A DNA stretch of 64,000 bases, taken from IMG/VR virus record IMGVR_UViG_3300031857_000010, positions 62,001 through 126,000 of that record; one strand, written 5' to 3'. The position numbers and the translations under genes were made by a program. Positions 7,632-56,407 of the stretch are shown piece after piece. The notes below the pieces were generated by a model. The model did no database searches, had not been told where the DNA came from, and was given only the letters and a program-made list of their open reading frames with translations. How positions within the stretch are numbered: position 1 is the first letter of the stretch; the number at the start of each line of letters is the position of its first letter.

Positions 7632-7689
7632 GTTTATAATTTGTTTTTTGTGGTTAATTAAAACGAAATTATAAAAAAAAAGTTACAAA

Positions 7690-8526: not shown

Positions 8527-8537
8527 AAAAAAAATAA

Positions 8538-8837: not shown

Positions 8838-8888
8838 TTTTTCTATATTTTATAAAATAAAAATATGAAAATAAAATAACAAAGTAAA

Positions 8889-9113
8889 TTAATATTCAGA
8901 ATCAAATTCTTGACCTTGATGCATAATCCCAATACTTACTTTGTGAGCTAATTCTTTTAATCTAATTAGTTTTTTTCTTGCCCTTCTTCCAGCTTTTCTG
9001 TTTCTAGTAGGTCCAATAAATTTATATAAATCTTGTTCAGTTTGTTGAATTAAGAATTTTAATTTTTGAAAATTCTCATCAATATTATTATTATCGTTAA
9101 ATTGTGGTATCAT
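8889..9113 (-). CDS. Histone H1-like (Hc1 family) small basic protein
   Basis: NRKAGRRARKKL..LKEL..KVS resembles the Hc1-family GNKAAG.RARK motif. Confidence 0.6.
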   Translation of the reverse strand: MIPQFNDNNNIDENFQKLKFLIQQTEQDLYKFIGPTRNRKAGRRARKKLIRLKELAHKVSIGIMHQGQEFDSEY

Positions 9114-9118
9114 ATAAT

Positions 9119-21400: not shown

Positions 21401-22485
21401 TCATTGGCTAAATTATTTGATCCATTAACAACAGTTGTGTATGCACTTAAGCCTGAATTAGAAAAACCATTACCTATTAAAGAAAAACCTCCATAAGATC
21501 TATTTCCAGAACCTCCAATTATAGAGGCAAAATTACTATAAGAATAATTTGAATTACCTCCAACTACTAAAGAAGAATTTCCGTTTGTATAGTTATTAAC
21601 TCCACCGCCTATAAAACTGGTAAATCCGGAAGATAAATTAGAATAACCACCAACAACTGTTGAATAGTATCCATATACACTATTTCCAGTTCCGTTTAAT
21701 ATAGAGGAAAATCTAGAGTTATTCGATATAAAATTTAAAGAACCATTTCCTATAAAAGAATATTGTGAAGTATATCCTGAATTATATGTTCCATTACCTA
21801 TAAAAGAATAAGTAGAAGATGATAGAAAGTTTTTTCTACCGCCTAAAATGTTGCCAAATTTGCTATAATTTGTATTTCCACTACCTGCCACTAAAGCCCA
21901 ATCTGCATCAGTAATATGATTGCCTCGTTGGAGTTGTACAGGCATAAAATAACTAGAATAACCACCTGTATTTGTTCTACCAGTTTCCCAAAGAGTATGT
22001 CTTATGGTTACTATGTTTGATCCACTTATTATCTCAATAGCTGTACCAGCAGATAAATTTGTATAAAAAACTGTGGTATTGGCACTAGTTGTAAGATTGC
22101 CAAAACAATCAAGAGTTACAATATCATTACAATTTCCACTTAAAGATGATACTTGAATAGTAGATGCAGTTAATCCGCTTACTGAAATATTTGGTTGTAA
22201 ATAATATGTTATTACATTTCCGGTTGAGATACCTAAATTTGTTCCTGCCGAAAAACTTCTAAAATAATATGTGACACCAGTTCTTCCCGCAAAAACAGGA
22301 AAACCATTACCTAGTGTTGAAATACTTACTGTTCCGGTCTTTCCTCCAGTACTTGCACTAAATTCATCCAAATAATATCTTAAAGAACGTAAATTTACAA
22401 CATCCTTATCGTGTAATGGATCTGCTGCATTTACACCTCTTCTTCCAAAAAAATTTACACCTTCTGGTCCTAAAAGTTCAACCAT
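15457..22485 (-). CDS. Very large tail fibre/spike-like protein with (I/V)(I/L)NGxxN beta-solenoid repeats
   Basis: 2342 aa, very many IINGxxN/FIGNG repeats, a GSS-rich linker, and structural-gene context. Confidence 0.75.
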   Translation of the reverse strand: MVELLGPEGVNFFGRRGVNAADPLHDKDVVNLRSLRYYLDEFSASTGGKTGTVSISTLGNGFPVFAGRTGVTYYFRSFSAGTNLGISTGNVITYYLQPNISVSGLTASTIQVSSLSGNCNDIVTLDCFGNLTTSANTTVFYTNLSAGTAIEIISGSNIVTIRHTLWETGRTNTGGYSSYFMPVQLQRGNHITDADWALVAGSGNTNYSKFGNILGGRKNFLSSSTYSFIGNGTYNSGYTSQYSFIGNGSLNFISNNSRFSSILNGTGNSVYGYYSTVVGGYSNLSSGFTSFIGGGVNNYTNGNSSLVVGGNSNYSYSNFASIIGGSGNRSYGGFSLIGNGFSNSGLSAYTTVVNGSNNLANERFSIITNGYNNISTKPYSFIGNGLYGKNNTRFGSILNGAYNSLSASSDYGTIINGSGNTIDDGYFNTIIQGTDNYIKNSSKSSIKNGSSNSALTTNFFSILNGKENYVKYSNYSSIDNGKQNRGYVIYYSSIKNGNQNYIGIFNYADIINGYKNKLSRVYLYSGIGLPEHSNILAGKFNSGYSSYSNVINGRYNFVKSKQSLIGSGIYNQIGDKVYHDKTLRYSSILNGLYNQIFSFSPTLDELVYPPSINFLLTTNVNSTILNGIQNTATSSFTTILNGTNNLNIGVNSLIGNGHKNKIYGSFYSIIQNGVYNLISGSSINCSLVLNCNKNSYFNSIFNGSNNRIYSNDKNLETRYNSIINGKNNYIPTGNTYYSTIINGLNNSIFKSGSTITGGKNISIALTADTTAVPYLRITNIYQGPPTPFQFLTIDNNGYVFKTGITIPGGYGLTFNNLGNAGSPDGNIYSNQNLGVVYLRTISAGTNVQVIRSLNNNYITINVTGQTAPNISAGTAIEIVTGLTLNDTFGIRHTLWESGRTSTSTYAAATMAVQLQKGDNQASSNFALVAGKSNSGLSQYSTIIGGYQNLIESGSKYSFIGSGIKNTGSSNWSTIINGSGNTASGLRSFIGNGIENSAKTVTSIIINGRANLADGFRASIINGQYNVADGELSIINQGIYNNANSKYSSIINGSGNTATQFLFPTIVNGRDNKASGKHSFIGNGYNNYVDNSYTSILNGNSNTAITQYATIVNGKYNSGKTKFFIIGGGYKNSTFASSYLTRGYQFIGNGSGNTAKGGFSTIVNGKNNSTKDLTNFAYSFIGNGAYNYVNSYDNNSSFSTILNGSGNTTKGAFNVITNGQNNTAFTSNVNFGFSFIGNGQNNFSNFGRFNFFGTGKFNTAVNGFYTTIINGEYNYIGNSKSKSSIFNGTGNTIKTDYSTIDNGRNNFIINGNFSSIVNGSGNTASTSYSLILNGQHNIAYGVSAYDFNTIINGKHNRASKYYSLIGSGRFNTANSRFSTVINGSGNTVHYGRKYHLIGNGRGNFISAGPSVSTILNGYDNFIRPNNAGFSSENSIIGGSGNTVGTRSGLPPNVYSLGHTILGGRNNQIADYRHSTILNGINNLITLNNGGYNLIGGGKQNTIYHARLTNSLGFNTVLAGWLNRVGFSSPTPSGTRYDTKFSQVLNGYINTARTQFTTIINGRVNLVGKDRGVIDSTYSAIFSGSANTVYGSTSIIGNGKSNLISGSTSAILNGLTNDIYSNYSAIVNGKINRVIKNNAFNSTYSGIFNGSGNTVFGDLSFIGNGTSNLISGSTSAILNGFTNDVYSNYSSVINGKINRVIKNNAFNSTYSGIFNGSGNTVYGSQSFIGNGRSNLISGATSLIGNGQDNEIFSSYSTIINGSGNTTHRLTTQSSIIGGISNYISGQNTTNIFALIGQGFLNRIIPTRGAGYSFPFSIYQPEFATILNGTGNTNKTKFSTILNGKDNYIESRGGNGNMPKTGYTTIVNGVANTAITKHVFIGTGVENYAGIFANQGNQGYNVIVNGVQNKVVRKWGSILNGFKNSATTFYSTVINGEYNLANGIKTFIAQGSGNTAGFNTYATIINGKNNTASGIGSFIGNGSGNTAINTYSSTINGISNKATGIGSFIGNGLSNTTLGQYSAVVNGQENITNAIRSAILNGSGNTVSAGSTNSSIVGGSANIINSNVTNAVILGSTGLSLSNPSSSSTGNDNNHTYVDYLRIRNTPNGGTKFLTIDANGYVYSSTSGGGGGTSGSSGSSGAAGTSGSSGSSGSRGTSGSSGSSGSSGTSGTSGTDKGLIAANSGYINNPNANRYYVGNSIDGGWNAVPWDLQAGINAPATLTDNSDFNCGVPLPRDIGTSYKIKVCGMAYSRGAVGVSRNLTVQLSYLLCSDFAIDARSTKAIADNEATPVGFNSTSGHACFSVSANAPVDLLACETFLYVGFQVDNTLGNTLEFSYTISYEPA
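17330..17725. repeat. 198-nt (66-aa) tandem duplication within the fibre gene
   Basis: GTATTTCCTGA.CCATTGAAAATGCCAGAATAAGT occurs at 17333 and 17531; protein repeat NRVIKNNAFNSTYSGIFNGSGNTV appears twice. Confidence 0.85.
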
Positions 22486-31455: not shown

Positions 31456-31860
31456 ATGGCAAGAGCATTAGTAAACAAAGATTTATCAGCAAGATTGACT
31501 GAAAATAATTTTTCAGAATTACAATCTCAAGTGACACTAGGACCAAGTTTAAGTACAGCGACCGTACAAGGAGAAGCTATTGCTGCCAATGTAAATGATG
31601 CAGTATCGGTAAATCAATGGGTTGCTATGACTCAAGCAGATCAAGGTTTATTGAATGCAATATATGACTTTGTTAATACCACGAAAGAAGGTGCAAGTGT
31701 CATACCTGATAATAGATTTGGCAGAACAAAAAAACTATTCTTTAATTTTTATGGTACTATGGGTAAGTCCATAAAACCCGGAGAAATAGGTCAATTTGAA
31801 GTTAATTTTAGTTATCCACCAAGATCTTTAACAGATACTGGTTCATCCGCAGCACTTTAA
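31456..31860 (+). CDS. Hypothetical protein, tandem duplicate copy A
   Basis: 134 aa; 130 of 134 residues identical to the next ORF. Confidence 0.8.
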   Translation: MARALVNKDLSARLTENNFSELQSQVTLGPSLSTATVQGEAIAANVNDAVSVNQWVAMTQADQGLLNAIYDFVNTTKEGASVIPDNRFGRTKKLFFNFYGTMGKSIKPGEIGQFEVNFSYPPRSLTDTGSSAAL

Positions 31861-31890: not shown

Positions 31891-32295
31891 ATGGGAAGAG
31901 CAATAGTCAACAAAGATTTATCAGCAAGATTGACTGAAAATAATTTTTCAGAATTACAATCTGAAGTTACTTTGGGTCCAAGTTTAAGTACAGCGACCGT
32001 ACAAGGAGAAGCTGTTGCTGCCAATGTAAATGATGCAGTATCGGTAAATCAATGGGTCGCAATGACTCAAGCAGATCAAGGTTTATTGAATGCAATATAT
32101 GACTTTGTTAATACCACAAAAGAGGGTGCCAGTGTAATACCTGATAATAGATTTGGAAGAACGAAAAAATTATTCTTTAATTTCTACGGGACTATGGGAA
32201 AATCTATAAAGCCCGGAGAAATAGGTCAATTTGAAGTTAATTTTAGTTATCCACCAAGATCTTTAACAGATACTGGTTCATCCGCAGCACTTTAA
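31891..32295 (+). CDS. Hypothetical protein, tandem duplicate copy B
   Basis: 134 aa; near-identical to the previous ORF. Confidence 0.8.
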   Translation: MGRAIVNKDLSARLTENNFSELQSEVTLGPSLSTATVQGEAVAANVNDAVSVNQWVAMTQADQGLLNAIYDFVNTTKEGASVIPDNRFGRTKKLFFNFYGTMGKSIKPGEIGQFEVNFSYPPRSLTDTGSSAAL

Positions 32296-35575: not shown

Positions 35576-36637
35576 ATGGTCTCTGGCGAAAATAATATTG
35601 TCATTAATTCTATTCTGAAAAGGATCCTTGGTGATCCAAAAGATGAATACGATAATATCATACAATTCGAATATAATTGTCCAAGTTCATATTGTAGAAG
35701 TGATATAGATAAATTTAATTTAGGCTACAATTCAGAATTAAATATTTTTCATTGCTGGAAGTGTAAATATAAGGGTTTTGTTAAGAGAGTTATAGAAGAT
35801 TTTGGAACAGAAGATGAGAATGAAAAAATAAAATTAATTTTTCCTAAATCCTCTAAAAATTATTTACAAAACAACAACAACATTACTAATAATAAAATTG
35901 TTGTAGACCAAAATTTAATCTGTGAACTTCCGGAGGGTTTTAAGCCACTTTCTCAAACTTATAGTAGTTTGAATTATAGAAAAGCAATAAAATATTTACA
36001 ATCTAGAAAAGTTGATTTTGAAACAATAAAAAAATACAATATAGGTTATACCGAAGACGGTCCAAGAAAATTTAGAATTATAATTCCATCTTATAATGTC
36101 GATGGTAAAATAAATTATTATGAAGCAAGGAGTTATTTACCTAATATAAAACCCACATATTTAAAACCTGATTTTCCTGATAAACAAGATATAATTTTTA
36201 ATGTTAAAAACATAAATTTTAATTTGCCAGTTTATCTTGTTGAAGGTGTATTTGATATGTTTCCAATATTGAATGCTATTCCTTTATTGGGTAAGACTAT
36301 TTCTGATCTTTTGCTGACCAAGCTTTTAGAATTTAAATCTAAAATTGTCATTTGTTTAGATGAAGACGCAAAAAAAGATGCATATAATCTATATTTTAAA
36401 TTAGAAAGTTTGGGTTTAGACGTTTATTATGTTGATATTAAAGGAGATATAGCAAAATATTATGAGCAAAATGGAAGAGAAGAATTGATTAAAATTCTAA
36501 GAAATCATAAAAAAATAGATTTTAATCATATTTTTGTTGATAAATTGAAAGGTAGAAAAAAAGGTTATTTAAAAAATATAAATCCTGATTTTGCAAAGAG
36601 GGAATTTGAGAGGTTAAAAAATAAAATAAATGAATAA
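35576..36637 (+). CDS. DNA primase (Zn finger plus Toprim)
   Basis: CPSSYC..HCWKC; LVEGVFD; CLDEDA. Confidence 0.85.
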   Translation: MVSGENNIVINSILKRILGDPKDEYDNIIQFEYNCPSSYCRSDIDKFNLGYNSELNIFHCWKCKYKGFVKRVIEDFGTEDENEKIKLIFPKSSKNYLQNNNNITNNKIVVDQNLICELPEGFKPLSQTYSSLNYRKAIKYLQSRKVDFETIKKYNIGYTEDGPRKFRIIIPSYNVDGKINYYEARSYLPNIKPTYLKPDFPDKQDIIFNVKNINFNLPVYLVEGVFDMFPILNAIPLLGKTISDLLLTKLLEFKSKIVICLDEDAKKDAYNLYFKLESLGLDVYYVDIKGDIAKYYEQNGREELIKILRNHKKIDFNHIFVDKLKGRKKGYLKNINPDFAKREFERLKNKINE

Positions 36638-39600
36638 TAAAATTGCACACATAGCTGATCTACATATTAGATTCGGTTCAAGACATCAAGAATATAAAAC
36701 TGTATTTAACAGACTTATAAAAGATTTAAAAAATGAACAACCAAGAAGAATAGTTGTTGCTGGAGATATTTTTCACCTGAAAATAAATATGTCTCCAACG
36801 TCTATTGATATTGCCGGTAATTTATTGAGGGCCTTATCCAAAATAGCACCAGTTGATTTGATTATTGGAAATCACGATTTTAATCAACAAGATTTAACTC
36901 AGGGCGATGCAATTTCTCCATTAATTGATTTATTAGAGAATGGTTTTATTGTCACAAAAGAAAATCCAGAATTGATAATTCCCAAGGATGGCAATGGTGT
37001 ATACTTTTTCAAGGATTCTGGTTTATATGAAATTGAAGAAGATATTATTTATGGTGTTTATTCTTTATTAGATAACGAGATATTAACTTTAACTGAAAAA
37101 GAAAAAAACAAAAAATATATAGCTCTTTACCACGGTCCTGTTTATGGATGCGTAAATGACAATGGATATCAACTGAAGGGTGATGAATTAATGAAAATTA
37201 CAGCCTTTAACAATTTTGACATTGTTATACTCGGTGATATACACGAACACCAATCATTTGAAAGAAAAAATGGAGATACTGCAGCTTATTCCGGCAGTTT
37301 AATTCAACAAAATTTCGGTGAGTCAATTGAAAAAGGATATTTGATTTGGGACTTAAATTCAAATGAATTTGAGAGAAAACATATCCCAAATGATTATGGG
37401 TATTGTAAGTTAAATATCACTAAAGGTGAAATTGTTGAAGAAAGATTACAGGATTTAAAGTTTTCTTTAGATAAGAAAAAAACTAGAGTTTATATCGAGA
37501 TTGAGGATGATGCTGAAAACGAAAATGTTGAAAAGAAGTCACAAGTAAGAAAATGGATTAAAGACATTCATGGCTGCGAAAATGTAACCGTTGAATTTAA
37601 ACCCATTATCAAGGATAAGGTTTTAGAATCAGATGAGGATGATTTTTCTTATGAAAATTCCGAAAGCTTTGAGAAGCTTTTGATTGATTATTTAAATCAA
37701 AATTCTTACGAAAATATTCAGGATGTTATTGAATTGAGCAAGGAAATTGATTCTAAAATAAATTTAGAATCGAATGATAAGAAGGGTATTGAATGGGATT
37801 TGAATAAAATGGAAACCTTTAATATTTTTTCTCATCCAGCACAAACAAATGAATTTGATTTTGACAAATTAAATGGAATCACCGGTATATTTGGAAAAAA
37901 CTACTCAGGAAAATCCAATTTAATAAAAGCTTTAGTGTGGGGATTATATGAAAAGATTTTGGGAGGAGGAGATAATCACAAGGTTGTTAATCTTTACACA
38001 GGTGTTAACAAGTCTTGGGTGAGAATTTACATTACAATAGCAGGTATTAAATATAGAATTGAAAGAGGTATAACTGTTTCATCCAAAAGAGATGGAACAA
38101 CCAAAGCTGCATATTCTGTCAAATATGAATATTTATCTCACGATGAAGATGGTGAAGAAATTTGGATCAATGAAGATTCTGATCGTGCTGCTAAAGAGAA
38201 AAAAGAGTTTAAAAAACTAATAATTGATAGTATAGGAACTTTCGATGATTTTACAAAAATATCACTTCAGACACAAGGTGGAAAAGATGATTATTTAAGT
38301 TTACAACAACAACCAAAGAATGATTTGATAAGAAAGTTTTTTGGTTTGGAGGTTTTTGACATCAAATATGAATTCGCTAATAAAATTTTTAATCAAATAA
38401 AGTCTGTACAAAAACAACTTGGAGACCCATCTGAAATCGAAAAACAGATTGAAGAATTGAAGGATAAAAATTCTAATGATAAAATACATCTTGACTCTCT
38501 ACAAAAGGATAAAGATGAAAATGATGAACAGATAGAAATTCACAATTCTGAAATTTTAGAACTCACAAAAAAAATATTGCAATTAGAAGAAACTACTGAA
38601 AAAAATATAACTGAAGTAGAACAAAAAATAGAGAAAAATAATTCAGAAATTAATAAATTTTCTGAAAATATAAATTCATTATCTGATTGGACATCTAAAA
38701 ACTTTCTTAAGGAAACACCTCAAGAAATTGCTGGATTAAAATCAAATGACCTAGAAAATAAAATAGAGTCTATAAAAACACGATTCCAAAAAAATAAAAA
38801 TTTATATCTTGAATTTGAGAAATGGATTAAGGAAAATCCTAAACTTACTGTTGAGGAATCAAAACCATATGAAGATGAATTAGATTCTAAACGAAAAGAT
38901 AAATTAAATTTAGATAATGATCTAAAGGTTTCTAGAGGAGAAAAGTGCCCAACTTGTAAACAAACCACTAAACAAGCTAATCCAGAAGTTGAGCAAGAAT
39001 GTATTGTGAAGATTTCTTCAATCACATCAGAAATAAACGGATTACAAGAAAAAATAAATTCGATAAAAAGTGCTTCTACTCATAATATAAATTTTGATGG
39101 TCAAAAAAATAAGTTAGACTCTCTTAAAATATCATTACAATCTGATAAAAATGAAATGGATTCATTGAAAGTCAATTTAGAAAAATTGAAACAAGCCGAA
39201 ACTGACATCTTGCATAATGAGGAGGTAAAAAATAAAAACAGAGATTTGGAGGATCAAAAAAATAAATTGAAGAGTTTTGAAGATAAAAATAAAGACCTCA
39301 AAGAACAAATTTCTAAAATAAAATCAAACGAAACCAAGATATCATCTAATAGTAAAATTGATAACAAAATTGAAGCTTTAAAACAAAGTATAAAAGAATA
39401 CAAGATTGTTATTCATCAACTTGATAATAAAATAAAAGATTTTTCCGGTACAATAAAAGTTAATCAAAACAATATCGAAAACTTGATTGATAAATTAAAT
39501 CAGATAAAAGAATCAGTTAGAATATATGCTAAATATTCTGTTTATTTACAGGCTGTTTCAAGAGATGGAATACCAGCTCAGATAATTAAAAAGAAACTTC

Positions 39601-40061
39601 CAATTGTTAATTATAGAATCAACTCAATTCTATCAAATATTGTTAACTTCAGAATTGATATGTTCATTAAAAACAATGGAGATGTTCAAGAAATATTTTA
39701 TTTCAGTCCAGACAAAATAGATTCGCTTCCTTTATCTATGGGTTCTGGATCTCAGAAATTTGTTGGTAGTATAGCAATTACCGATGCATTACACTCTGTA
39801 AGCTGTTTGATGAAACCAAGTCTAAGGATTATAGATGAAGGTTTTGGTACGCTTGATGAAGATAAGACAGCAGACATTGGAAAGGTCTTTTCTTATTTAA
39901 GTAACAGATATAAAAATATTCTTATAATAACTCATAGAACAGAAATAAAAGATTTTGTAAATAACATTATACAAGTTACCAAATCTAATTCCGGGTTGAT
40001 TAAAGAACAGGTTGAGGCCAATCCTGATGCAGGAATTTCACAGTTTTCTATAACTTCATAA
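36630..40061 (+). CDS. Fused SbcD/Mre11 nuclease and SbcC/Rad50 ATPase (gp47-gp46-like)
   Basis: HIADLH, GDIFH, GNHD, GDIHEHQ; then GKNYSGKS, CPTC zinc hook, SMGSGSQ, IIDEGFGTLD, ILIITH, all in one ORF. Confidence 0.92.
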   Translation: MNNKIAHIADLHIRFGSRHQEYKTVFNRLIKDLKNEQPRRIVVAGDIFHLKINMSPTSIDIAGNLLRALSKIAPVDLIIGNHDFNQQDLTQGDAISPLIDLLENGFIVTKENPELIIPKDGNGVYFFKDSGLYEIEEDIIYGVYSLLDNEILTLTEKEKNKKYIALYHGPVYGCVNDNGYQLKGDELMKITAFNNFDIVILGDIHEHQSFERKNGDTAAYSGSLIQQNFGESIEKGYLIWDLNSNEFERKHIPNDYGYCKLNITKGEIVEERLQDLKFSLDKKKTRVYIEIEDDAENENVEKKSQVRKWIKDIHGCENVTVEFKPIIKDKVLESDEDDFSYENSESFEKLLIDYLNQNSYENIQDVIELSKEIDSKINLESNDKKGIEWDLNKMETFNIFSHPAQTNEFDFDKLNGITGIFGKNYSGKSNLIKALVWGLYEKILGGGDNHKVVNLYTGVNKSWVRIYITIAGIKYRIERGITVSSKRDGTTKAAYSVKYEYLSHDEDGEEIWINEDSDRAAKEKKEFKKLIIDSIGTFDDFTKISLQTQGGKDDYLSLQQQPKNDLIRKFFGLEVFDIKYEFANKIFNQIKSVQKQLGDPSEIEKQIEELKDKNSNDKIHLDSLQKDKDENDEQIEIHNSEILELTKKILQLEETTEKNITEVEQKIEKNNSEINKFSENINSLSDWTSKNFLKETPQEIAGLKSNDLENKIESIKTRFQKNKNLYLEFEKWIKENPKLTVEESKPYEDELDSKRKDKLNLDNDLKVSRGEKCPTCKQTTKQANPEVEQECIVKISSITSEINGLQEKINSIKSASTHNINFDGQKNKLDSLKISLQSDKNEMDSLKVNLEKLKQAETDILHNEEVKNKNRDLEDQKNKLKSFEDKNKDLKEQISKIKSNETKISSNSKIDNKIEALKQSIKEYKIVIHQLDNKIKDFSGTIKVNQNNIENLIDKLNQIKESVRIYAKYSVYLQAVSRDGIPAQIIKKKLPIVNYRINSILSNIVNFRIDMFIKNNGDVQEIFYFSPDKIDSLPLSMGSGSQKFVGSIAITDALHSVSCLMKPSLRIIDEGFGTLDEDKTADIGKVFSYLSNRYKNILIITHRTEIKDFVNNIIQVTKSNSGLIKEQVEANPDAGISQFSITS

Positions 40062-44889: not shown

Positions 44890-46230
44890 ATGGCTATAGA
44901 AGATTTGGATGACTCTAAATTATTATTTCCTTCTGATGGGAATAACAATAAAAAAAATAGATCAAACACTCCGCTGTTAGATAATTTTGGAAAAGATATT
45001 ACAAAATTAGCTGCTTCTGGAAAAATTGAACCTGCAGTAGGAAGAGAAAATGAAGTAGATAGAATTATTCAAATTTTAAGTAGAAAGAAAAAGAATAATC
45101 CTGTATTAGTTGGTCAACCCGGTGTAGGTAAAACTGCGATTGTAGAATCTCTTGCAAATAAAATAGTTGATAAAAAGGTTAGTGTTGTTCTTCATGATAA
45201 AAGAATAGTAAGCTTAGATATTTCACTCATAGTTGCCGGAACAAAATACAGAGGTCAGTTTGAGGAAAGGATGAAAGCAATTATGGATGAAATTGAAAAT
45301 AATCCTAACATTATTTTATTTATTGATGAATTACACACCATAATTGGTGCTGGTAATTCTGCTGGATCTTTAGATGTTTCTAATATTATAAAACCTGCTC
45401 TTGCAAGAGGTACAATGCAAATTATAGGTGCTACAACAATTGAAGAATATAAAAAATCGATTGAAAAAGATGGGGCTATGGAAAGAAGGTTTCAAAAAGT
45501 AATGATTGAGGAACCCTCTATTGAAGAAACTAAAACTATTCTTAATAACATTAAAGGAATTTATGAGGATTTTCATAATGTTACTTTTGATGCCGAAGCA
45601 ATAACATCTGCAGTAGATTATTCTGTTAGATATATTACCAATAGATTTTTACCAGATAAAGCGATCGATATTATTGATGAAGCAGGTGCTAGATTACATT
45701 TGGATAATCTCCACTTACCAGTAGAATTAGAAGTTCTTGAAAATAAATTGAATGATCTTAAGAACGAAAAAAACGAAGTAATAAAATCTCAAAAATATGA
45801 GCAAGCTGCTAAGATCAGAGACAAGGAGAGAGATTTAATAAAAGAAATAGAGATTTTTAAATACAACTGGCAAAATCAACAAAAAACCAAAAGGGTTCCT
45901 GTCACAGAACATGATATTGCGAGAGTCGTTTCAAAAATGATTGGAATTCCGGTAACTCAAATCACAGAAAGTGAAGGTGTTCGTCTAATGAAAATGGGTG
46001 AAGAGTTGAAAAAAAGGGTTATTGGACAGGATGAAGCAATTGAAAAAATATCCGAATCTATTCAGCGATCAAGATCTGGATTGAGTAATCCAAAAAAACC
46101 TATTGCAAGTTTTTTGTTTCTTGGTTCAACTGGTATTGGTAAGTGTTTAGGAAAAAATACAGAAATAACAATAATGGCTGATGATATTTTAATAAATAAA
46201 ATATTAGAAAACAGAAAAAACAAAAATTAA
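44890..46230 (+). CDS. clpC: ClpC-type AAA+ ATPase, N-half (NBD1, UVR M-domain, start of NBD2), fused to a split-intein N-part
   Basis: GRENEV, NNPVLVGQPGVGKT, LFIDELH, RFLPDKAIDIIDEA, KYEQAAKIRD; ends FLFLGSTGIGK-CLGKNTEI. Confidence 0.93.
   Translation: MAIEDLDDSKLLFPSDGNNNKKNRSNTPLLDNFGKDITKLAASGKIEPAVGRENEVDRIIQILSRKKKNNPVLVGQPGVGKTAIVESLANKIVDKKVSVVLHDKRIVSLDISLIVAGTKYRGQFEERMKAIMDEIENNPNIILFIDELHTIIGAGNSAGSLDVSNIIKPALARGTMQIIGATTIEEYKKSIEKDGAMERRFQKVMIEEPSIEETKTILNNIKGIYEDFHNVTFDAEAITSAVDYSVRYITNRFLPDKAIDIIDEAGARLHLDNLHLPVELEVLENKLNDLKNEKNEVIKSQKYEQAAKIRDKERDLIKEIEIFKYNWQNQQKTKRVPVTEHDIARVVSKMIGIPVTQITESEGVRLMKMGEELKKRVIGQDEAIEKISESIQRSRSGLSNPKKPIASFLFLGSTGIGKCLGKNTEITIMADDILINKILENRKNKN
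46144..46227 (+). mobile_element. Split intein N-fragment (28 aa)
   Basis: CLGKNTEITIM block A begins directly after the Walker A GK and is followed by a stop codon. Confidence 0.85.
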
Positions 46231-46235
46231 CACTA

Positions 46236-46282
46236 TTTAGGTTTAACAGGGATAGGAAAATTAGTATCCCTGTATTCCTAAA
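46236..46282 (+). promoter_or_regulatory. RNA hairpin covering the endonuclease translation start region
   Basis: ACAGGGATA/TATCCCTGT 9-bp stem, plus an outer TTTAGG/CCTAAA pairing that reaches the A of the ATG. Confidence 0.5.
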
Positions 46283-47379
46283 TGATAATTAAAAGTAGAA
46301 AAAAAGTATTGTTCAATATCGAATCAATAGAAGAGTTTGAAAAATATTTAAGTAAAGAGATTAAGAATTTCAAAAATTTAAATAATTTAGAAAAAGGACA
46401 AAGAGAAAATCTTATAGTTGCTCTTTCAGAAAAAAATGAAATAGGTATAAAAAAATTCAGAAATATATTTGTAAAAAATTATATTAATTGTAAAACACTT
46501 TTTAATAAAAAATATTGGTTAGAAAGGGGTTATTCTCACGAAGAGGCAGTTAGTGAAATTTTTAAAATTCAAAAAATTAACAACATAAAAGCGGTTGAAG
46601 TAATGCAAGATTTAAAAAAATATGATCTTAATAATTACAAAAAAAAAAGAAATATCTATGTTGAGTATTGGATAGAAAAAGGATTCACTATTGAAGAAGC
46701 AAAAATAAAATTAAAAGAAAGACAATCAACTTTTTCACTTGAAAAACTTAAATTAAAATATGGCGAGAAAGAAGGTTTAATCAAATTCAATCAACGTAAT
46801 GATAAGTGGCAAAATAGTCTTTATAGTAAAATGACTTTTGAACAAAAAAATGAATTTGAAAAAAGCAAGTGTATAACCAAAGATAAAATGGTTTCTAAGT
46901 ACGGTGAAAAATTGGCTACAGAAAAATGGGAAAATTATATTAAGACTCACTCAAATATGTGGAATGCGTCTGGTATATCAAAAAAATACATTGATGAAAT
47001 TCTATCTATTATTGGACCTGATGAAATTGAAACTGAAACCATATTTTACGGTTCAGATATAAAAAGTGAATTTTACCTATATGACAAAGAAACGATGTCT
47101 TTGTATTGGTATGATCTCACTTTTTTTGATAGAAAAAAAATAATAGAATTTGACGGTATTCACGTACATCCGGATCCAAATGCTCTTGAAAATGAACGTT
47201 TAAATTGGAAACAAGCGTACACAAATAAAAGTTATGAAGAAGCTTTGTCAAAAGATATAGCTAAAGAACAATTTGCAATAAAAAATGGTTTTGAAGTACT
47301 TAGAATTAGATTACCAAAACATTCAACAAATACAATAAAAGAGTCTATTGATAAATGCATAAAATTTATAAAAAAATAA
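46282..47379 (+). CDS. Free-standing Vsr-like/PD-(D/E)XK homing endonuclease
   Basis: C-terminal YDL....KIIEFDGIHVH...K...A.KNGFEVLRI; N-terminal YW.E.G..EEA and KYGE repeats. Confidence 0.7.
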   Translation: MIIKSRKKVLFNIESIEEFEKYLSKEIKNFKNLNNLEKGQRENLIVALSEKNEIGIKKFRNIFVKNYINCKTLFNKKYWLERGYSHEEAVSEIFKIQKINNIKAVEVMQDLKKYDLNNYKKKRNIYVEYWIEKGFTIEEAKIKLKERQSTFSLEKLKLKYGEKEGLIKFNQRNDKWQNSLYSKMTFEQKNEFEKSKCITKDKMVSKYGEKLATEKWENYIKTHSNMWNASGISKKYIDEILSIIGPDEIETETIFYGSDIKSEFYLYDKETMSLYWYDLTFFDRKKIIEFDGIHVHPDPNALENERLNWKQAYTNKSYEEALSKDIAKEQFAIKNGFEVLRIRLPKHSTNTIKESIDKCIKFIKK

Positions 47380-47383
47380 TAAA

Positions 47384-47800
47384 ATGATTGAATTAAAAGT
47401 AAAAATAGAAGAGATATTCGAAGCAGTTTCTCAATTAGAAGCTCAAGAATTTATTCCAGAAAAAGAGATTTTTCAAAAATCTAAAATAATGGTCAAAAAC
47501 GAATTTGGTAAATGGATAAATGTTTTAGGTATGATCACAAAAAAAGATCAAGTTCGTGAAATTAAATTTTCTGATGGAAGCTTCTGTGTAGTTGCAGATA
47601 ATCACAAAATACGTAAAGAAAAGAATGAATGTTGTTTAGTTTCTAATTTGTTGATCGGAGATTTTGTTGAAAAGGCAGATGAAAGTAAAATTTCTGTAAT
47701 TAGCAACAATTTAACAGGTGAAATTGAAACTGTTTTTGATATGCACGTTGATTCTGAAACTCATTTATATCAAACAGAAAATGGAATTGTACATCACAAC
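47384..47800 (+). mobile_element. Split intein C-fragment (139 aa)
   Basis: Block B VADNH, block F TVFDMHV, block G GIVHHN, +1 Thr. Confidence 0.88.
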
Positions 47801-48643
47801 ACAGAATTATCTAAAGCACTATCTGAATATTTATTTAATGATGAAGATTCGCTAATTAGAATTGACATGAGTGAATATATGGAACCACATAGTGTATCAA
47901 AATTAATAGGTGCTCCTCCGGGATATGTTGGTCATGGTGATGGCGGTCAATTGACTGAAAAAGTTAGAAATAAACCTTATAGTATTGTTTTATTTGATGA
48001 AATAGAAAAGGGTCATAAAGATGTGATAAATATTTTATTACAGCTTTTGGATGAAGGAAAATTGACTGATGGAGACGGTGTTGAAATTAATTTTAAAAAT
48101 ACTGTGGTTATTATGACATCAAATATTGGAACGCAAGAAATTACTGAAAACAAACCAGTAGGATTCAATTCAGATCTTTTGAAAAATAATCTTGAAAACC
48201 AAAGGATAATTGAAAAGGCATTAAAAAAACATTTCAGACCGGAGTTGCTTAATAGAATTGATGATGTTGTTATATTCCAAAAATTGACCCAAGATAATGT
48301 ATTAGATATCGTAAAAATTCATTTAAGAAACTTTGAAAAAAATGTTATTTCTCAAGGAATAAATGTTGAATTTACAGATAAAATGATTGATTTTATTGGT
48401 GAAGAAGGTTATTCTGACGAATATGGAGCAAGGCCTATTCTTAGAGTTATAACAAAATTTGTTGAAACTCCTTTGTCTAAAGAATTACTTCTCAAAAAAA
48501 TTATAAAAGGTGATGATATTATCATTGATTTTGACAAAGAAAAAGGAACTTTAATTTCTAAAAGAGAAGAAAAAAAAGAAACCAAAGTTAAAAATGTTGT
48601 CAAAAAAAAGGTTACGAGAAAAAAGAAAGAGGATAATATTTAA
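47384..48643 (+). CDS. clpC: Split-intein C-part fused to ClpC C-half (rest of NBD2)
   Basis: HHN|TELSKAL, RIDMSEYMEPHSVSKLIGAPPGYVG, LFDEIEK, IMTSNIG, VGF loop, FRPELLNRID, YGARP. Confidence 0.93.
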   Translation: MIELKVKIEEIFEAVSQLEAQEFIPEKEIFQKSKIMVKNEFGKWINVLGMITKKDQVREIKFSDGSFCVVADNHKIRKEKNECCLVSNLLIGDFVEKADESKISVISNNLTGEIETVFDMHVDSETHLYQTENGIVHHNTELSKALSEYLFNDEDSLIRIDMSEYMEPHSVSKLIGAPPGYVGHGDGGQLTEKVRNKPYSIVLFDEIEKGHKDVINILLQLLDEGKLTDGDGVEINFKNTVVIMTSNIGTQEITENKPVGFNSDLLKNNLENQRIIEKALKKHFRPELLNRIDDVVIFQKLTQDNVLDIVKIHLRNFEKNVISQGINVEFTDKMIDFIGEEGYSDEYGARPILRVITKFVETPLSKELLLKKIIKGDDIIIDFDKEKGTLISKREEKKETKVKNVVKKKVTRKKKEDNI

Positions 48644-49842: not shown

Positions 49843-50166
49843 ATGGAAAAAATAAACAAAATTTTAGGTAAGTATGGAATAATCATGCTTCTTGTGTTCA
49901 GTATTTTGACATTCTTTAACACTTGTGGAACAAAAAGTTCAATAAAGCAAACAAATAAAAGAATTGATGAATTAGAGAAAAGAGATTCTTTGAATATGGA
50001 AATTCTCTCAATTGAAAGAGAAATAAGTATTTTGAAAACATCAAGAGAAATTGTCTATACTAATAATGCAATTGTTAGAACAACAGCTAGGCCGGATGAT
50101 GTAATGAATGACTATTCTAGAAAAATAGATGAGTTACAGAAAAAATTAGATAAGTTGAAGAAATGA
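49843..50166 (+). CDS. Membrane-anchored coiled-coil protein (possible lipoprotein)
   Basis: N-terminal hydrophobic helix ending NTCG, then coiled coil. Confidence 0.6.
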   Translation: MEKINKILGKYGIIMLLVFSILTFFNTCGTKSSIKQTNKRIDELEKRDSLNMEILSIEREISILKTSREIVYTNNAIVRTTARPDDVMNDYSRKIDELQKKLDKLKK

Positions 50167-50969
50167 TAATTTACAAAACTACAAATCTTTTAAATGGTAA
50201 GATATATATAGGTAAGGATAAGAAAAATAATAAAAATTATTTGGGTAGTGGAGTTGCCTTAAAAGAGAGTATAAAAAAATACGGAAAAAATAATTTTAAA
50301 AAAGAAATTATTTGTTTTTGTAATAATTTAGAAGAGTTGAATGAAAAAGAAAAATATTATATTAAATTTTACAATTCTCAAGATAAAAATATTGGATATA
50401 ATATAACTGAAGGGGGCGATGGTAATAGTTTGAGTTGGAATGGTCCAAAATTGACTGATTCTCATAAACAAAATATATCAGATGGTTTAAAAAAATCAGA
50501 TAAATTTAAGAAAATGTGGGAAGGCGATGAACACAAGAAAAAATTAAAGGAATCTAGGGCAAAATCAGAAAAAGTTAAGAAAATTATAGAATCTCAAGAT
50601 TGGAAAAATAAAATTAGTGAATCAGTGAAAAATTCAGAAAAATTTAAGGAGGCTATTAAAAACCCAGAAAGATCTCAAAAAATTAGTAAATCAATGTTGG
50701 AATCAGAAATTTTAAAAAAATCTAGATCGTCTAATGAATTTAAGGAAAAATGTAGTGTATGGCAAAAAGGCAAGAAAAGATCACCGGAATTTTTAAAAAA
50801 ATTTAATGAATCAAGAGCTAAAACATTCGAAGCAAAAAATAAAGAAAAAAAAGATAATTTGTTAAAAATATTACAAGAAAATGATTTTGATATTTTAGAT
50901 ACTTCAAAAAAACTAAATATAACAACCTTTTCTGTATATAGATTAATTAAAAAATTTAATTTAAGATGA
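50163..50969 (+). CDS. Free-standing GIY-YIG (Seg-like) homing endonuclease
   Basis: MIIYKTTNLLNGKIYIGK, YLGSG, EKYYI, GYNITEGGDG, and basic NUMOD-like repeats. Confidence 0.88.
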   Translation: MIIYKTTNLLNGKIYIGKDKKNNKNYLGSGVALKESIKKYGKNNFKKEIICFCNNLEELNEKEKYYIKFYNSQDKNIGYNITEGGDGNSLSWNGPKLTDSHKQNISDGLKKSDKFKKMWEGDEHKKKLKESRAKSEKVKKIIESQDWKNKISESVKNSEKFKEAIKNPERSQKISKSMLESEILKKSRSSNEFKEKCSVWQKGKKRSPEFLKKFNESRAKTFEAKNKEKKDNLLKILQENDFDILDTSKKLNITTFSVYRLIKKFNLR

Positions 50970-51934: not shown

Positions 51935-51954
51935 ATAACGTATATTGCAAAAAG

Positions 51955-51983
51955 AAAGGCGATCATTTTTGATCGCCTTTTTT
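51955..51983. terminator. Bidirectional intrinsic terminator
   Basis: AAAGGCGATCA-TTTT-TGATCGCCTTT between convergent genes. Confidence 0.88.
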
Positions 51984-52000: not shown

Positions 52001-54064
52001 TTAATTTTTTTCACCCGGTTCAACATCGGTGTGAACGTTATCACCCAAACCATGTTTGTTCTTAAATTTATTAATCATTGTATTTAAAGCAAAGGTTGAT
52101 AATCCATGAGTGTCTTGAGCGGGTCTCATATCTTTTTTATGTTGGTTTGTTGGTTCATTAATTGTTCCATCATCTAATACATAATTACTAGTGTTGTGAT
52201 ACCATTTATCATCAAACCATACATAAGCTGGAAACTGTTCACCGTAAGAATAAGCAACATACATTTTTCCTAGACCCCCTAAATCTTCACCATAAATGTG
52301 AGATCCAATAAAGTTTTCTCTTTTTTTAACAAAATCTTTTGAATCAGGATTAGTTATTCTTTCTTCTTCTAAATCATCCTCTTCTAAATTAAATTTTTTT
52401 TTTGACTCAGAGAGAAAAGGTCTTATAGAATTTTTAATATTCTTTACTTTAAAAATCAATTTCTCAAGCTCTTCAATAAGAGGTTCAATCGATTCTTGTA
52501 ATTTTTCTGAAACTTCAGGATATTCAAATTTTATATCATTACTAACAATTTCCAATTCATTCAACATGTAATTGGCTTTATTCAAACCATCTACTGTATT
52601 GTTTATATAATTATAAATATCTTGATCAAGATCCTTCACAGCAACATCATATCCCTCATTAATATAGTTATTGATCTTGCTTATTTTGTCTAAAGTATTA
52701 TTTATTTTATTGAATCTAAAATTGAAATTATCATTTATATCTTGAATGTTTTCTAGCATAACTTCAGATAAATTTCTTTTACTTTTTCGAATAACTTTTC
52801 CTTTATCGTCTAAAGGTAGAGGTTTGCCAAATTCATCATAAGCTGTTCCAGAGGTTGGTTTTAAACTTTTATCTAATTCTTCATAATCCTTGGAGGAAAT
52901 TTTTTTCCATTCACGACCTTTAGTTCCTGTACCTTTCAAAATATCTAAGTTTTTTTCTGACCAATCTTCTATACCCATAATTTCTTTAAATCTAGGATCT
53001 CTAAACAATGCTATTAATTTAGGTCTTAATTGAGAAACTTTAGACTTTAAATTACTTTCTGTAGCTTCTGAATATTCAATACCTAATTCTTTTCCTATGT
53101 AATCATACATACTTTCTTTTCCTTTGGAAGAAATATCTTCAACGTCTATTTCGCTTATATCACCGTCAACATCATATACAGCATCTATAAGTTTTGAAGC
53201 TGCTGCTTCTTCATTTTTTGTTTCAGAAAAAATAAAGTTGAAGAATCCTTGTAATACTTTTCTTTCAGTTTCATTTAATTGGTCTAATATTAATTGAAAT
53301 TTATCTTTATCTTTCTTTAATGAATATTCAACATCTGATGCACCATATGTAGATGCAACGTCTAATTCCTCATCTTCATCTCCAGAGACAGTTGAACTTT
53401 TAACAATAGGATCTATATTAATATCTTTTCTTCTTTGTTTTTTTGAAAATATATCCATTATATCTTGAGGCCAAGCTACTTTTACAAAAGAATAATCAAA
53501 AGGGGAAGAATTTGGATTGTATTTTTTGTTTACTAACTGTTCTTGTATTGCTTTGGTAAAACCATCTAAAACTAGATCAATGTCTATTTTTAAAGGATCT
53601 ATACCGGGAACTCCACTAGCAGCTCTATATCCTACATTGCTAAGTCTGCCTTGACTGCCATAAGGATTGTAAAAACTCAATAAAAATTCAAATATTTTTT
53701 GCTGATTAACAGTGTCTGGTTTCCAGTCATCTACTATTTCGTCTTGTTTAACATATTCAGTGGCTAGTATTGTAGTTATAGCATCTTGGGTTTTGTTTGG
53801 AAAACCCTCAGTTGGATGTTTCATTTGTTTTGAAGATCCATTAACAACTTTGTCAACGTAGTTTATAACAAAAATTTTTTCAAGATCGCTCAAAATTTCG
53901 AAACGAGATTTTGGTGCAGCATATCTTGTGTAATAATTCACCATTCTTTTATATTCAGGGTCATCTACTGAATTTATATCTTCTTTAATTAGGAAAAGTT
54001 CATTGTCTGTAGAAGCTCCTAAAATATCTTCTAAAAGAAATTTTATTATTTGATCTTTTGTCAT
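52001..54064 (-). CDS. Large hypothetical protein with sigma70 region 2/4-like segments
   Basis: DLVLDGFTKAIQ..KYNP..SPF; LDQLNETERKVL; YIGKELGI...SNLKSKVSQLRPKL. Confidence 0.6.
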   Translation of the reverse strand: MTKDQIIKFLLEDILGASTDNELFLIKEDINSVDDPEYKRMVNYYTRYAAPKSRFEILSDLEKIFVINYVDKVVNGSSKQMKHPTEGFPNKTQDAITTILATEYVKQDEIVDDWKPDTVNQQKIFEFLLSFYNPYGSQGRLSNVGYRAASGVPGIDPLKIDIDLVLDGFTKAIQEQLVNKKYNPNSSPFDYSFVKVAWPQDIMDIFSKKQRRKDINIDPIVKSSTVSGDEDEELDVASTYGASDVEYSLKKDKDKFQLILDQLNETERKVLQGFFNFIFSETKNEEAAASKLIDAVYDVDGDISEIDVEDISSKGKESMYDYIGKELGIEYSEATESNLKSKVSQLRPKLIALFRDPRFKEIMGIEDWSEKNLDILKGTGTKGREWKKISSKDYEELDKSLKPTSGTAYDEFGKPLPLDDKGKVIRKSKRNLSEVMLENIQDINDNFNFRFNKINNTLDKISKINNYINEGYDVAVKDLDQDIYNYINNTVDGLNKANYMLNELEIVSNDIKFEYPEVSEKLQESIEPLIEELEKLIFKVKNIKNSIRPFLSESKKKFNLEEDDLEEERITNPDSKDFVKKRENFIGSHIYGEDLGGLGKMYVAYSYGEQFPAYVWFDDKWYHNTSNYVLDDGTINEPTNQHKKDMRPAQDTHGLSTFALNTMINKFKNKHGLGDNVHTDVEPGEKN

Positions 54065-54068
54065 TTTT

Positions 54069-56318
54069 TTAAATATTAAAACTTTTTAATAATTTGTTGT
54101 TATAATTATCGAATTCATTTTTTAATTCGTTAATTAATTTCTGTATTTTATTCATACTCTCATCTAATCTTGCTTGTGGTGAATTTCCCAATTCTGTTCC
54201 CGAAGGTAATTGCTTGAGTAATGAATATACATTTCTAAGATAGGAAGGATTCTGCAATAAGAATCCTTTGGATGATAATAGTTTTTTAAATTCTTCAGAT
54301 TCTTCTTCTCCTGCTTTGAAATATTTTTCTAGCTCTCTGCCCTCTGCACCAGAACCCAAAGTTACTTTTTTAAGCAATTGTATGAATTCTCTTATTGGTA
54401 TATTTTTCTTACCTAATTTATTTGTTACTTCAGAAGGTAAGCCTTGTCCAAGATAGTTATTATCTTGTAATGATAATATAAAATCATCTAGATATAATTC
54501 TGGTTTTGTCATCCAATCATAAGTTCCTTTCGGGCTTGATGGTTTTAAACCAGCTTTAATTTCTTTATCTCTTTGTCTTTTTTCCTTAATAGACTCTTTT
54601 TCAACAAATTTATAAATACCATAACCAAACATTCTTAATAAAATAGATGTGGCTAAATCTTTATTGAAAGATATGAAAGATTTTATTTTATTTTGACCAT
54701 ACTTTTCAGAATCAGGTTCATTTATTATTTTTTCAATGATGTCTTTTGCAACATTTGATAAATTACCTTTTATTTTATCTACTATACTGGCTGCTAATAA
54801 TTCTGCTTCCTTTTTTTCAATATTTGTCGGCATTTCAACGGCTTCCTCTTCTGATGGTAAATATTTTTTAACAGAAGTCATAAAGTTGCCCCTGAATGTA
54901 TCAGAAACATTTTTATAAAAAAGTGGGTTGTTGGGTTGGTATATGGCTTTTCTACCTCTGGTCTCTTCTCCTTTTTCTTTAGGAGATCTAACATCATATT
55001 CAAATCCATTAGCTTTTTGCAAATCTTCAAGAAAAGATTGTTTATCATCATATGTATAAACAAAATAAGCTTTACCAGTTCTCTTGTCTTGCTTTTCTTC
55101 TGATTTAGTAAAATTACCTATTGCTTTATCTGTAGGTACTTTTGAAATAAAAGAGAATGGAAATGAAAGTCCAGATGCTAAATCAGCAGCCTTTGAATTA
55201 TCAAATAATAAATCTGTAAATCCTTTTAATTGATCTATTGCATAATTCCTTACAACAGTATAAGTCCAAGCACCAATGTTAGCATAATTAAAATCATATT
55301 TTCCTTCTGAAATTTCATCTGATACCTCATCAATACCTATTAATTTTCTTAATGCTTTTTGTACTCCTTCGTATGCATATTCTTGAACATTCTCAAATTT
55401 TAATAATGGTTGTAAAACCTTTTCTACAACTAGAATCATATATACCTCTAGAATAGATTTACATCTATCTGCTATTTTGCCTTTTAATCTACCATCACCT
55501 AAATTTAACAAAAACGTTTCTTGTTCTTCAGCTAATCCTCTACTGATACCACTATCCATTTGAATATTAGATGGTATTTCCAAAGTGGTATTCATATTTT
55601 TTTCAGCAGCATAATACATTCTTGCTAAAAATTCTAATTCTCCGGCACCCTGTGGTGTTATAGTTCCCTTTAAGTTACTTGAGCTAATTGCATTTGCCAT
55701 TTTAGCTCTATTAAATGGAATCCAAGTTCTACTTATTTCTTTCTTAATTCCATCTTTTTCTTCTGTACTCAAAGTATAAGTTACTGGAATCTTTTTTTGA
55801 CCTGAAAATTGTTTACTAGTTGCTAATGATAAATCTTTCAATGCACCAGAATATTTCAGACGCATTTGACCAATTTTTTCATCCGATCCCGGTTGCCCTG
55901 TGTCTATTTGCCCTTTTTCTCTTTCATAAGGCATAACATTTTTTTCAAAATTTAATATTTTTTTAGTTTCATCACTCAAACCCTCATTTTCTATTAAATC
56001 CAAAACTTCTAATTGAAATTCTTCTAGTTCTCCAAAACACAAAGCTGCTTTCATTCCAAAAGGAGGATCAACAACACTTTTTTGAGTGACAGTGCTGGTT
56101 GATAAGTCTTTTTGTAATTTTTCTTTTCCAGATATTTGACTAGTAGGTTGGAATCCAAAAAGGTCAAATTTATTTTCTTCTTCTTTAATTAATTCGGTAA
56201 CAAATGCTTGAATAAATAATTTTTTAGCTTTTTCATTGGATGGATTTCTTAAAAATACATCCTGAGCCTTTAATCTTATTTCATTCAAAGATAAATTACT
56301 ATTGTTTAATAGTGCCAT
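54069..56318 (-). CDS. Large hypothetical protein with sigma70 region 2-like segment
   Basis: YAYEGVQKALRKL...GAWTYTVVRNYAIDQL. Confidence 0.6.
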   Translation of the reverse strand: MALLNNSNLSLNEIRLKAQDVFLRNPSNEKAKKLFIQAFVTELIKEEENKFDLFGFQPTSQISGKEKLQKDLSTSTVTQKSVVDPPFGMKAALCFGELEEFQLEVLDLIENEGLSDETKKILNFEKNVMPYEREKGQIDTGQPGSDEKIGQMRLKYSGALKDLSLATSKQFSGQKKIPVTYTLSTEEKDGIKKEISRTWIPFNRAKMANAISSSNLKGTITPQGAGELEFLARMYYAAEKNMNTTLEIPSNIQMDSGISRGLAEEQETFLLNLGDGRLKGKIADRCKSILEVYMILVVEKVLQPLLKFENVQEYAYEGVQKALRKLIGIDEVSDEISEGKYDFNYANIGAWTYTVVRNYAIDQLKGFTDLLFDNSKAADLASGLSFPFSFISKVPTDKAIGNFTKSEEKQDKRTGKAYFVYTYDDKQSFLEDLQKANGFEYDVRSPKEKGEETRGRKAIYQPNNPLFYKNVSDTFRGNFMTSVKKYLPSEEEAVEMPTNIEKKEAELLAASIVDKIKGNLSNVAKDIIEKIINEPDSEKYGQNKIKSFISFNKDLATSILLRMFGYGIYKFVEKESIKEKRQRDKEIKAGLKPSSPKGTYDWMTKPELYLDDFILSLQDNNYLGQGLPSEVTNKLGKKNIPIREFIQLLKKVTLGSGAEGRELEKYFKAGEEESEEFKKLLSSKGFLLQNPSYLRNVYSLLKQLPSGTELGNSPQARLDESMNKIQKLINELKNEFDNYNNKLLKSFNI

Positions 56319-56407
56319 TATTGATTTTCTTTTATTTAATAAATAGCCAATAATTTGAAAAAATCATTCAAATTTCTTATATTTACTAAGTCAAAAAACA
56401 GATAAAA

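Follow-up and report, generated by a model that had tools for sequence, protein, structure and literature searches.

Does a phage make a sigma factor together with its structural proteins, and what could such a factor do at the end of an infection? The question is raised by two adjacent open reading frames (ORFs), P0002 and P0001, in a 64,000-nt stretch of viral DNA (called the window here), which corresponds to bases 62001-126000 of the 216,699-bp IMG/VR virus record IMGVR_UViG_3300031857_000010, itself about 83% complete. According to the ORF list and translations, P0002 (749 aa; window 54069..56318, minus strand) is the first gene of an operon and P0001 (687 aa; 52001..54064, minus strand) the second. 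An earlier note, based on reading the sequence by eye, had described the pair as giant proteins with hidden sigma-like segments; its coordinates and lengths are exact, but "giant" is overstated, as the same window holds a 2342-aa ORF. To redirect the host RNA polymerase (RNAP), phages are known to produce small sigma factors in the early or middle phase of infection, or they bring their own polymerase in the virion. Here we show that P0002 carries a genuine, albeit diverged, sigma domain 2 resembling those of extracytoplasmic function (ECF) sigma factors and of gp55. With slightly more confidence than doubt, we further propose that P0002 and P0001 constitute a late-expressed bipartite sigma-like factor aimed at the host RNAP, in a phage without an RNAP of its own.

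The sigma domain 2 of P0002 (regions 1.2 to 2.4) spans residues 204-368 (55215..55709, minus strand) and lies between a conserved N-terminal region and a beta-rich region (~370-485), which is followed by a helical C-terminal part. The peptides that had been taken for an ECF-type region 2, YAYEGVQKALRKL...GAWTYTVVRNYAIDQL, are present at residues 314-364 (window 55227-55379), and their resemblance to this region goes beyond chance. A six-frame search of the whole genome with the Pfam model Sigma70_r2 returned three canonical sigma factors and one weak match (E 0.015, window 55224-55301), the latter coinciding exactly with the segment flagged before. At the same position, Sigma70_r2 matched 15 of the 25 family members (E <= 1; best E 6.3e-5), whereas every other Pfam family in this member-by-member scan was matched by one member only. 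The few PDB matches of the family profile include the ECF sigma factor SigE (2q1z) at the sigma segment (E 2.2 for the close family, 0.099 for a broader alignment), which is the best PDB sequence match of the P0002 profile. In the family alignment (A1), residues W351, V355, N358 and D362 do not vary and K365 hardly does; the ECF pattern W...[IV]..N...D..[RK] of regions 2.3/2.4 is thus found in P0002, and also in the distant members.

The AlphaFold model of P0002 has a mean predicted local distance difference test (pLDDT) score of 64, with values of mostly 75-90 in the sigma stretch. We aligned this model to 48,161 PDB representatives without a prefilter: sigma domain 2 accounted for 24 of the top 26 rows, and in a second structure list sigma chains filled 29 of the top 30 rows, with a clear gap between the sigma chains and the unrelated chains beneath. 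By structure search, P0002 therefore has the helical-bundle fold of sigma domain 2 (regions 1.2 to 2.4). One may ask if this is a generic likeness among helical bundles, the two proteins being structural, scaffold or other unrelated late proteins. The search of BFVD with the P0001 model, which returned only tape-measure-like coiled coils, would agree with such an explanation. We nevertheless regard it as highly improbable: sequence and structure converge independently on the same 50 residues, no Pfam family other than Sigma70_r2 recurs among the members, the two structure lists are headed by sigma chains that are set off from the rest, and a region-3.2-like motif is colinear in fused relatives (see below).

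The family is small and without annotation. Close homologues of P0002 number about 17 and distant ones about 20, and an exhaustive search of 1.84 billion representatives returned 26 clusters only, about 20 of them distant proteins of 626-1204 aa that share the sigma region. Whole-protein Pfam and PHROGs searches of P0002 and P0001 were empty; megablast and tblastn searches of P0002 and its distant relative P0041 against isolated-phage records gave no match, and a word search with the sigma-2 profile of P0002 (A3) for shorter annotated relatives yielded nothing new.

P0002 and P0001 are one evolutionary and functional unit. The stop codon of P0002 and the start of P0001 are 4 nt apart, so that translation of the two is probably coupled. 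Their adjacency is kept in relatives, where homologues of both adjoin on shared contigs; in one relative, the gene that comes after the P0002 homologue (34% identity) encodes a P0001 homologue (38% identity). Fused relatives of 941-1204 aa also occur (P0041, P0054 and the large ORFs of L010, L011, L012 and L017). These contain the P0002-type sigma-2 at ~150-390 (E 1e-36 to 1e-91) and a second domain at ~690-950, which matches the N-terminal domain of P0001 (hhalign E 5e-5; hidden Markov model i-E 1.5e-4 to 0.05) and has weak Sigma70_r2 matches of its own (E 0.035 and 0.062). On the C-terminal side of the second domain follow the motif S[IL]D[AE]P[IL]G.[DE][DE]DG, which is similar to sigma region 3.2 and occupies the place of the acidic linker of P0001, and then a short tail resembling a helix-turn-helix (HTH). 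In the PDB, a profile built from the second half of the fused relatives (A7) matched nothing but RpoS, with regions 2.2-2.4 and 3.2 in colinear order (E 0.33). In the phages with fused relatives, the partner gene is short (144-385 aa), lies downstream or nearby, and of the P0001 parts retains no more than the coiled coil and/or the C-terminal domain. In other phages, this C-terminal domain is encoded by a stand-alone gene of 144-157 aa or resides within 272-385-aa proteins. That the same set of domains is cut at different points across phages argues that the parts work together.

In the model of P0001, we could distinguish a helical N-terminal domain, which leads via a disordered acidic linker into another helical region (250-380); a coiled coil and a poorly modelled C-terminal domain complete the protein. 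The N-terminal half probably represents a second, more degenerate sigma module composed of a sigma2-like domain, a 3.2-like linker and a region-4-like HTH. The N-terminal helical domain (residues ~30-215; 53420..53977, minus strand) is modelled by AlphaFold2 with pLDDT values of 85-95. Its last two helices (~161-211), which include the previously quoted DLVLDGFTKAIQ..KYNP (163-184), are similar to sigma regions 2.2-2.4: in a comparison of the alignment of this domain (A5) with the sigma-2 profile of P0002 (A3), hhalign placed residues 161-211 onto P0002 311-370 (probability 57%, E 1.1e-4). The acidic linker DINIDPIVK...GDEDEE (~212-250; 53315..53431, minus strand), defined on alignment A2, resembles sigma region 3.2. 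The region-4-like segment (~250-360; 52985..53317, minus strand) is made up of LDQLNETERKVLQGFF, an insert, and the HTH-like MYDYIGKELGI...KSKVSQLRPKL, within which the quoted YIGKELGI..SNLKSKVSQLRPKL is present at 322-350. Pfam Sigma70_r4 matched at residues 260-275 (E 0.08), exactly on LDQLNETERKVL (259-270), and hhalign of residues 240-385 (A6) with the profile of the phage's own RpoD-like sigma gave a probability of 72% (E 3.4e-5) over regions 3.2/4.1. Of the 50 best rows in the Foldseek PDB search with P0001, all of them sub-threshold, about 15 were sigma-A holoenzyme chains, and a feature search and a structure search of the Atlas each brought up one sigma cluster. What had been seen by eye in P0001 thus amounts to a moderate-to-weak similarity, carried by the hhalign values (E 1e-4 to 3e-5) and the Sigma70_r4 match; for the putative region-4 part, Sigma70_r4_2 was matched by only one of 13 members.

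This last result is one of several that weigh against assigning the pair to the sigma factors. No match anywhere reaches a curated threshold. The gathering score of Sigma70_r2 (PF04542) is 24 bits, P0002 scores 12.4-13.2 bits and its relatives come up to 21.8 and 22.9 bits; P0002 is therefore to be seen as a divergent sigma-2 and not as a canonical member of the family. Foldseek searches of the PDB with the whole models of P0002 and P0001 gave nothing at E <= 0.001. For P0001, the sigma support is transitive and weak (hhalign probabilities of 57-72%). Furthermore, two sigma-2-like domains cannot share one clamp-helix site, which leaves any docking scheme for the pair incomplete, and with three canonical sigma factors and TAnnTTTG motifs already present in this phage, a further sigma is not obviously needed. 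Some further comparisons were negative as well: hhalign detected nothing between the sigma-2 profile of P0002 and the phage's own RpoD-like sigmas (probability 0.2%) or between the family alignments of P0002 (A1) and P0001 (A2), and no region 4 HTH was detected in P0002. A complex prediction for the sigma-2 region of P0002 with beta-prime residues 150-420 of B. thetaiotaomicron had a score of 0.00 and speaks neither for nor against an interaction.

When would the pair be made? At 20 nt 5' of the ATG of P0002 we found the single-block motif CTATTTAT (56339..56346, minus strand), an 8-mer with 27-fold enrichment in the regions upstream of genes. The late-type motif mentioned in the earlier note is thereby borne out, as the same block stands before terminase and tail-type genes. 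In this promoter class, one of three upstream motif classes discerned genome-wide and termed class B, the block lies 5-43 nt before the ATG of the TerL gene, the 2342-aa, 513-aa (pre-neck-appendage-like) and 854-aa genes, P0002 and several others; it precedes 11 of the 128 genes with an upstream gap of at least 30 nt, compared to 0.4% of random 100-mers. From the identity of these genes we infer that class B is temporally late. As (C)TATTTAT, the motif is conserved at the same distance 5' of the P0002 homologues in L006, L007 and L010-L012, and also 5' of the separately transcribed C-domain genes in L010, L012, L013, L014 and L017. P0002 was also considered as the factor that starts late transcription; we rejected this candidate because P0002 itself is placed behind the late motif. 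A host-type class is represented by the Bacteroidota-type TAnnTTTG, which precedes 16 of the 128 genes (twofold enrichment), among them a sigma gene and the gene for the single-stranded DNA-binding protein (SSB). Class A, with the ECF-like arrangement TGTAACTT-N14/15-CGTTTAAAT, precedes the sigma gene at 6774-7631 and some 12 further genes, most of them small; it is probably recognized by the ECF-like sigma that the phage itself encodes (G000 199979-200656). Examples of TGTAACTT in the window are at 7680, 41748 and 60820, each with CGTTTAAAT 14-15 nt downstream.

The presence of sigma modules and the expression together with structural genes suggest that the pair probably acts on the host RNAP. 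We searched the phage genome, at its completeness of ~83%, for RNAP beta, beta-prime and T7-type domains and found none. According to our proposal of a late bipartite factor, the sigma-2 of P0002 would dock on the beta-prime clamp helices of the host RNAP core, and the P0001 module would supply the linker and flap-side contacts. The resulting complex could capture or re-programme the host RNAP late in infection, and the pair might then act in the dying cell or ride in the virion to the next one.

A stronger version of the latter idea had been put forward in the earlier note: the two proteins would be made late, packed in the capsid, possibly matured by proteolysis, and injected together with the phage genome. 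Host core RNAP would then be directed to phage promoters as soon as the DNA enters, already in the first minute of infection. We consider such a virion-delivered sigma unlikely, although a number of observations agree with it. The operon is under the promoter motif of terminase and tail-type genes, an arrangement kept across divergent phages, and it is hard to see what use the same cell would have for a transcription factor that appears only when the cascade ends. The virion RNA polymerases (vRNAPs) of N4 and of crAss-like phages, the virion RNAP of phiKZ and the T4 protein Alt are likewise expressed late and exert their effect on transcription when the next infection begins (PMC4496689, PMC7598289, PMC5512222). 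Their timing signal is like that of P0002 and P0001; in contrast, they are polymerases or an ADP-ribosyltransferase whose packaging was proven by proteomics, whereas P0002 and P0001 are sigma-like and lack catalytic domains. Late expression is hence compatible with delivery in the virion, yet does not establish it. The locus is located outside the structural module, with ClpB/DnaJ genes on one side and PcfJ/SSB genes on the other; TAnnTTTG before some genes, including a sigma gene, indicates that early transcription may need no injected factor, and our search of the literature turned up no report of a phage that packages a sigma factor.

Maturation by a head protease had been deduced from a richness in (L/I)xE motifs, which turned out not to be a distinguishing feature. 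P0002 has 14 such motifs versus 12.1 expected (z 0.6) and P0001 has 16 versus 9.3 (z 2.6), the latter z value being equal to those of DnaJ, the GIY-YIG endonuclease and the PcfJ-like neighbour. An [LI]xE lies within residues 10-13 of each protein, as would be fitting for processed virion proteins, but an N-terminal [LI]xE is seen in 14% of all ORFs of the phage. A T4-type prohead protease (Peptidase_S77) was searched for in the 83%-complete genome and not found. With ordinary LxE counts and no Peptidase_S77, T4-style LxE maturation was rejected as a supported feature, and P0002 and P0001 do not group with the T4-type head-internal proteins (IPs, Alt) as characterized by LxE motifs and a gp21-type protease.

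The C-terminal half of P0001 bears on yet another explanation. It contains a three-helix coiled-coil or spectrin-like bundle (~430-551; 52412..52777, minus strand), whose matches (MukF, spectrin, CorA) swamped both VIA-align lists for the P0001 model; an ESM Atlas shape search with this model gave meaningless rows (template modelling (TM) score < 0.2). The C-terminal domain (~562-687; 52004..52381, minus strand), delimited by its invariant columns, is predicted to have a DUF8033-like fold and ends in the tail HTDVEPGEKN. It hardly varies between proteins whose remaining sequence is 52-83% identical. Compared with L006, 34 of the 96 conserved codons of this domain show synonymous differences, and the constraint therefore acts on the protein; conservation of this degree suggests a conserved partner. 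The AlphaFold2 model of the domain is of low confidence (pLDDT < 50). The Atlas's own model of it, on the other hand, has TM scores of 0.92-0.94 (by row) to 87-95-aa viral proteins, one cluster of which is 34% PF26096, the small phage proteins of DUF8033. The domain of P0001 differs from these by a longer N-terminal LEEERITNP segment and by the conserved HTDVEPGEK tail, and a Pfam search with it gave no match at E <= 1. A literature search retrieved no paper mentioning DUF8033. If the pair were delivered in the virion, this domain might serve as a packaging or ejection handle.

The same features would also suit a sigma mimic or decoy, in which sigma-2 would have been retained solely for binding to RNAP. 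The complex would then sequester or inactivate the host RNAP late in infection and would not direct initiation. Such a decoy could serve in host shut-off, in clearing RNAP off the DNA before packaging, or in blocking a superinfecting phage. The degenerate region 4, the divergent second sigma-2, the large non-sigma domains (coiled coil and DUF8033-like), the late timing and the extreme conservation of the C-terminal domain, with the protein partner that it suggests, are all in line with this function. On the other hand, the best-kept part of the family is the loop and helix that contact the -10 element in ECF sigmas (N.GAW...V..N...D), which fits DNA recognition equally well as docking, and no anti-sigma or inhibitor fold was detected. 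We consider a pure decoy quite unlikely.

How do P0002 and P0001 compare with known sigma factors? The best sequence-level PDB matches are ECF (group 4) sigmas, such as R. sphaeroides SigE (2q1z), M. tuberculosis SigC sigma-2 (2o7g) and BldN (6dxo), which have the motif F/I..W...[IV]..N...D..[RK] in common with P0002. The ECF order of sigma2, acidic linker and HTH is probably mirrored in the N-terminal half of P0001 and in the second half of the fused relatives. ECF sigmas, however, are single proteins of ~170-200 aa, whereas here the modules are embedded in proteins of 687-1204 aa, accompanied by ~200 unrelated N-terminal residues, a beta-rich region, a coiled coil and a DUF8033-like domain. 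Unlike in ECF sigmas, there are two sigma-2-like domains per unit, and no member exceeds the Pfam threshold. The T4 late sigma gp55, which acts with gp33 and gp45 (PDB 7d7d chain F), is another candidate for comparison, since this phage likewise has a T4-type portal and terminase, and the T4 late promoter TATAAATA is a single A/T-rich block like CTATTTAT. Yet gp55 has 185 aa and is made before the late genes in order to switch them on, while P0002 has 749 aa and lies behind a late-type promoter; P0002 accordingly falls outside the gp55-type late sigmas, which are small, consist of sigma-2 only and are made pre-late.

The family is thus distinct in its size (650-1200 aa), its one or two diverged sigma modules, its tie to a DUF8033-like domain and its structural-gene promoter. 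This architecture, with regulation as for structural genes, was not found in the isolated-phage records or the literature searched. Should the pair bind RNAP, it would represent a new late or carry-over step in the transcription programmes of an abundant group of freshwater phages, whose hosts are probably Bacteroidota, and would give the widespread orphan domain DUF8033 its first functional context. Should it be delivered in the virion, this would be the first phage carrying a sigma factor instead of a polymerase in its particle.

The source of the window is an uncultured freshwater jumbo phage. Metagenomes with the same DNA are from lake and other freshwater samples of at least 14 studies; a search for RNA runs carrying the locus found none, all runs being DNA. 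The genome has a GC content of ~28% and encodes a T4-type portal, a large terminase with ~24% identity to terminases of T4-like phages, an SbcCD fusion, ClpB, DnaJ, SSB and a PcfJ-like gene. Among the 279 ORFs called in the whole genome, a Shine-Dalgarno-like motif precedes ~3%, and the leaders are A-rich (~60% A at positions -13 to -10 and -6 to -2). Few Shine-Dalgarno motifs and A-rich leaders are typical of Bacteroidota. This initiation signature makes the Bacteroidota host assumed in the earlier note plausible, and going by these sequence signals the phage probably infects a member of this phylum. Host inference via the phage DnaJ was uninformative (31-39% identity across many phyla).

Sigma70 Pfam searches detected three canonical sigma genes in this phage, two RpoD-like ones of ~285 aa in the window and one ECF-like gene outside of it. 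The RpoD-like genes form a tandem (5805-6668 and 6774-7631, both minus strand; 287 and 285 aa), have regions 2 and 4 above the Pfam thresholds, and are kept as a tandem in the related phages L098 and L099. With TAnnTTTG before one of them and the class A motif before the other, the arrangement points to a sigma cascade.

The operon itself is bordered by a 90-bp divergent intergenic region 5' of P0002 and, at its other end, by a GC-rich hairpin (GGCGATC...GATCGCC; 51949..51980) with A and T runs on its flanks, identified by reading the sequence. This hairpin is an intrinsic terminator, probably a bidirectional one, between P0001 and a convergent 322-aa ORF. Divergent from P0002 is a gene for a 661-aa protein with a C-terminal PcfJ-like domain (PF14284; 56408-58393, plus strand), followed by the SSB gene; the PcfJ-like neighbour is also present in the identical contig L008.

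Elsewhere in the window, inteins interrupt the portal gene (9119-12262, minus strand; Intein_splicing and HNH endonuclease) and the large terminase gene (12322-15063, minus strand; Intein_splicing, LAGLIDADG_3 and PT-HINT). ClpB is split over 44890-46230, 46282-47379 and 47384-48643 (plus strand). The outer two ORFs encode ClpB, with AAA and lid in the N-terminal part (446 aa) and AAA_2 and D2-small in the C-terminal part (419 aa), and the middle one is a 365-aa ORF of no assigned function (phrog_22677). In the related phage L013, an intact ClpB of 671 aa is encoded at 8518-10533. The split may reflect a mobile insertion or a gene broken by an invading element. A GIY-YIG homing endonuclease gene (50163-50969, plus strand) overlaps the ends of its neighbours and, together with the inteins and the split ClpB, indicates that mobile elements have invaded this genome heavily. 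The 2342-aa ORF (15457-22485, minus strand), which lies behind CTATTTAT, has a glutamate content of 1.2% and a weak collagen-repeat match near residue 2150; it is probably a fibre or other tail-type protein. An SbcD-like metallophosphoesterase is fused to an SbcC-like ATPase in a single 1143-aa ORF (36630-40061, plus strand). Finally, two adjacent 134-aa paralogues (31456-31860 and 31891-32295, plus strand) have near-identical N-termini (MARALVNKDLSARLTENNFSEL and MGRAIVNKDLSARLTENNFSEL).

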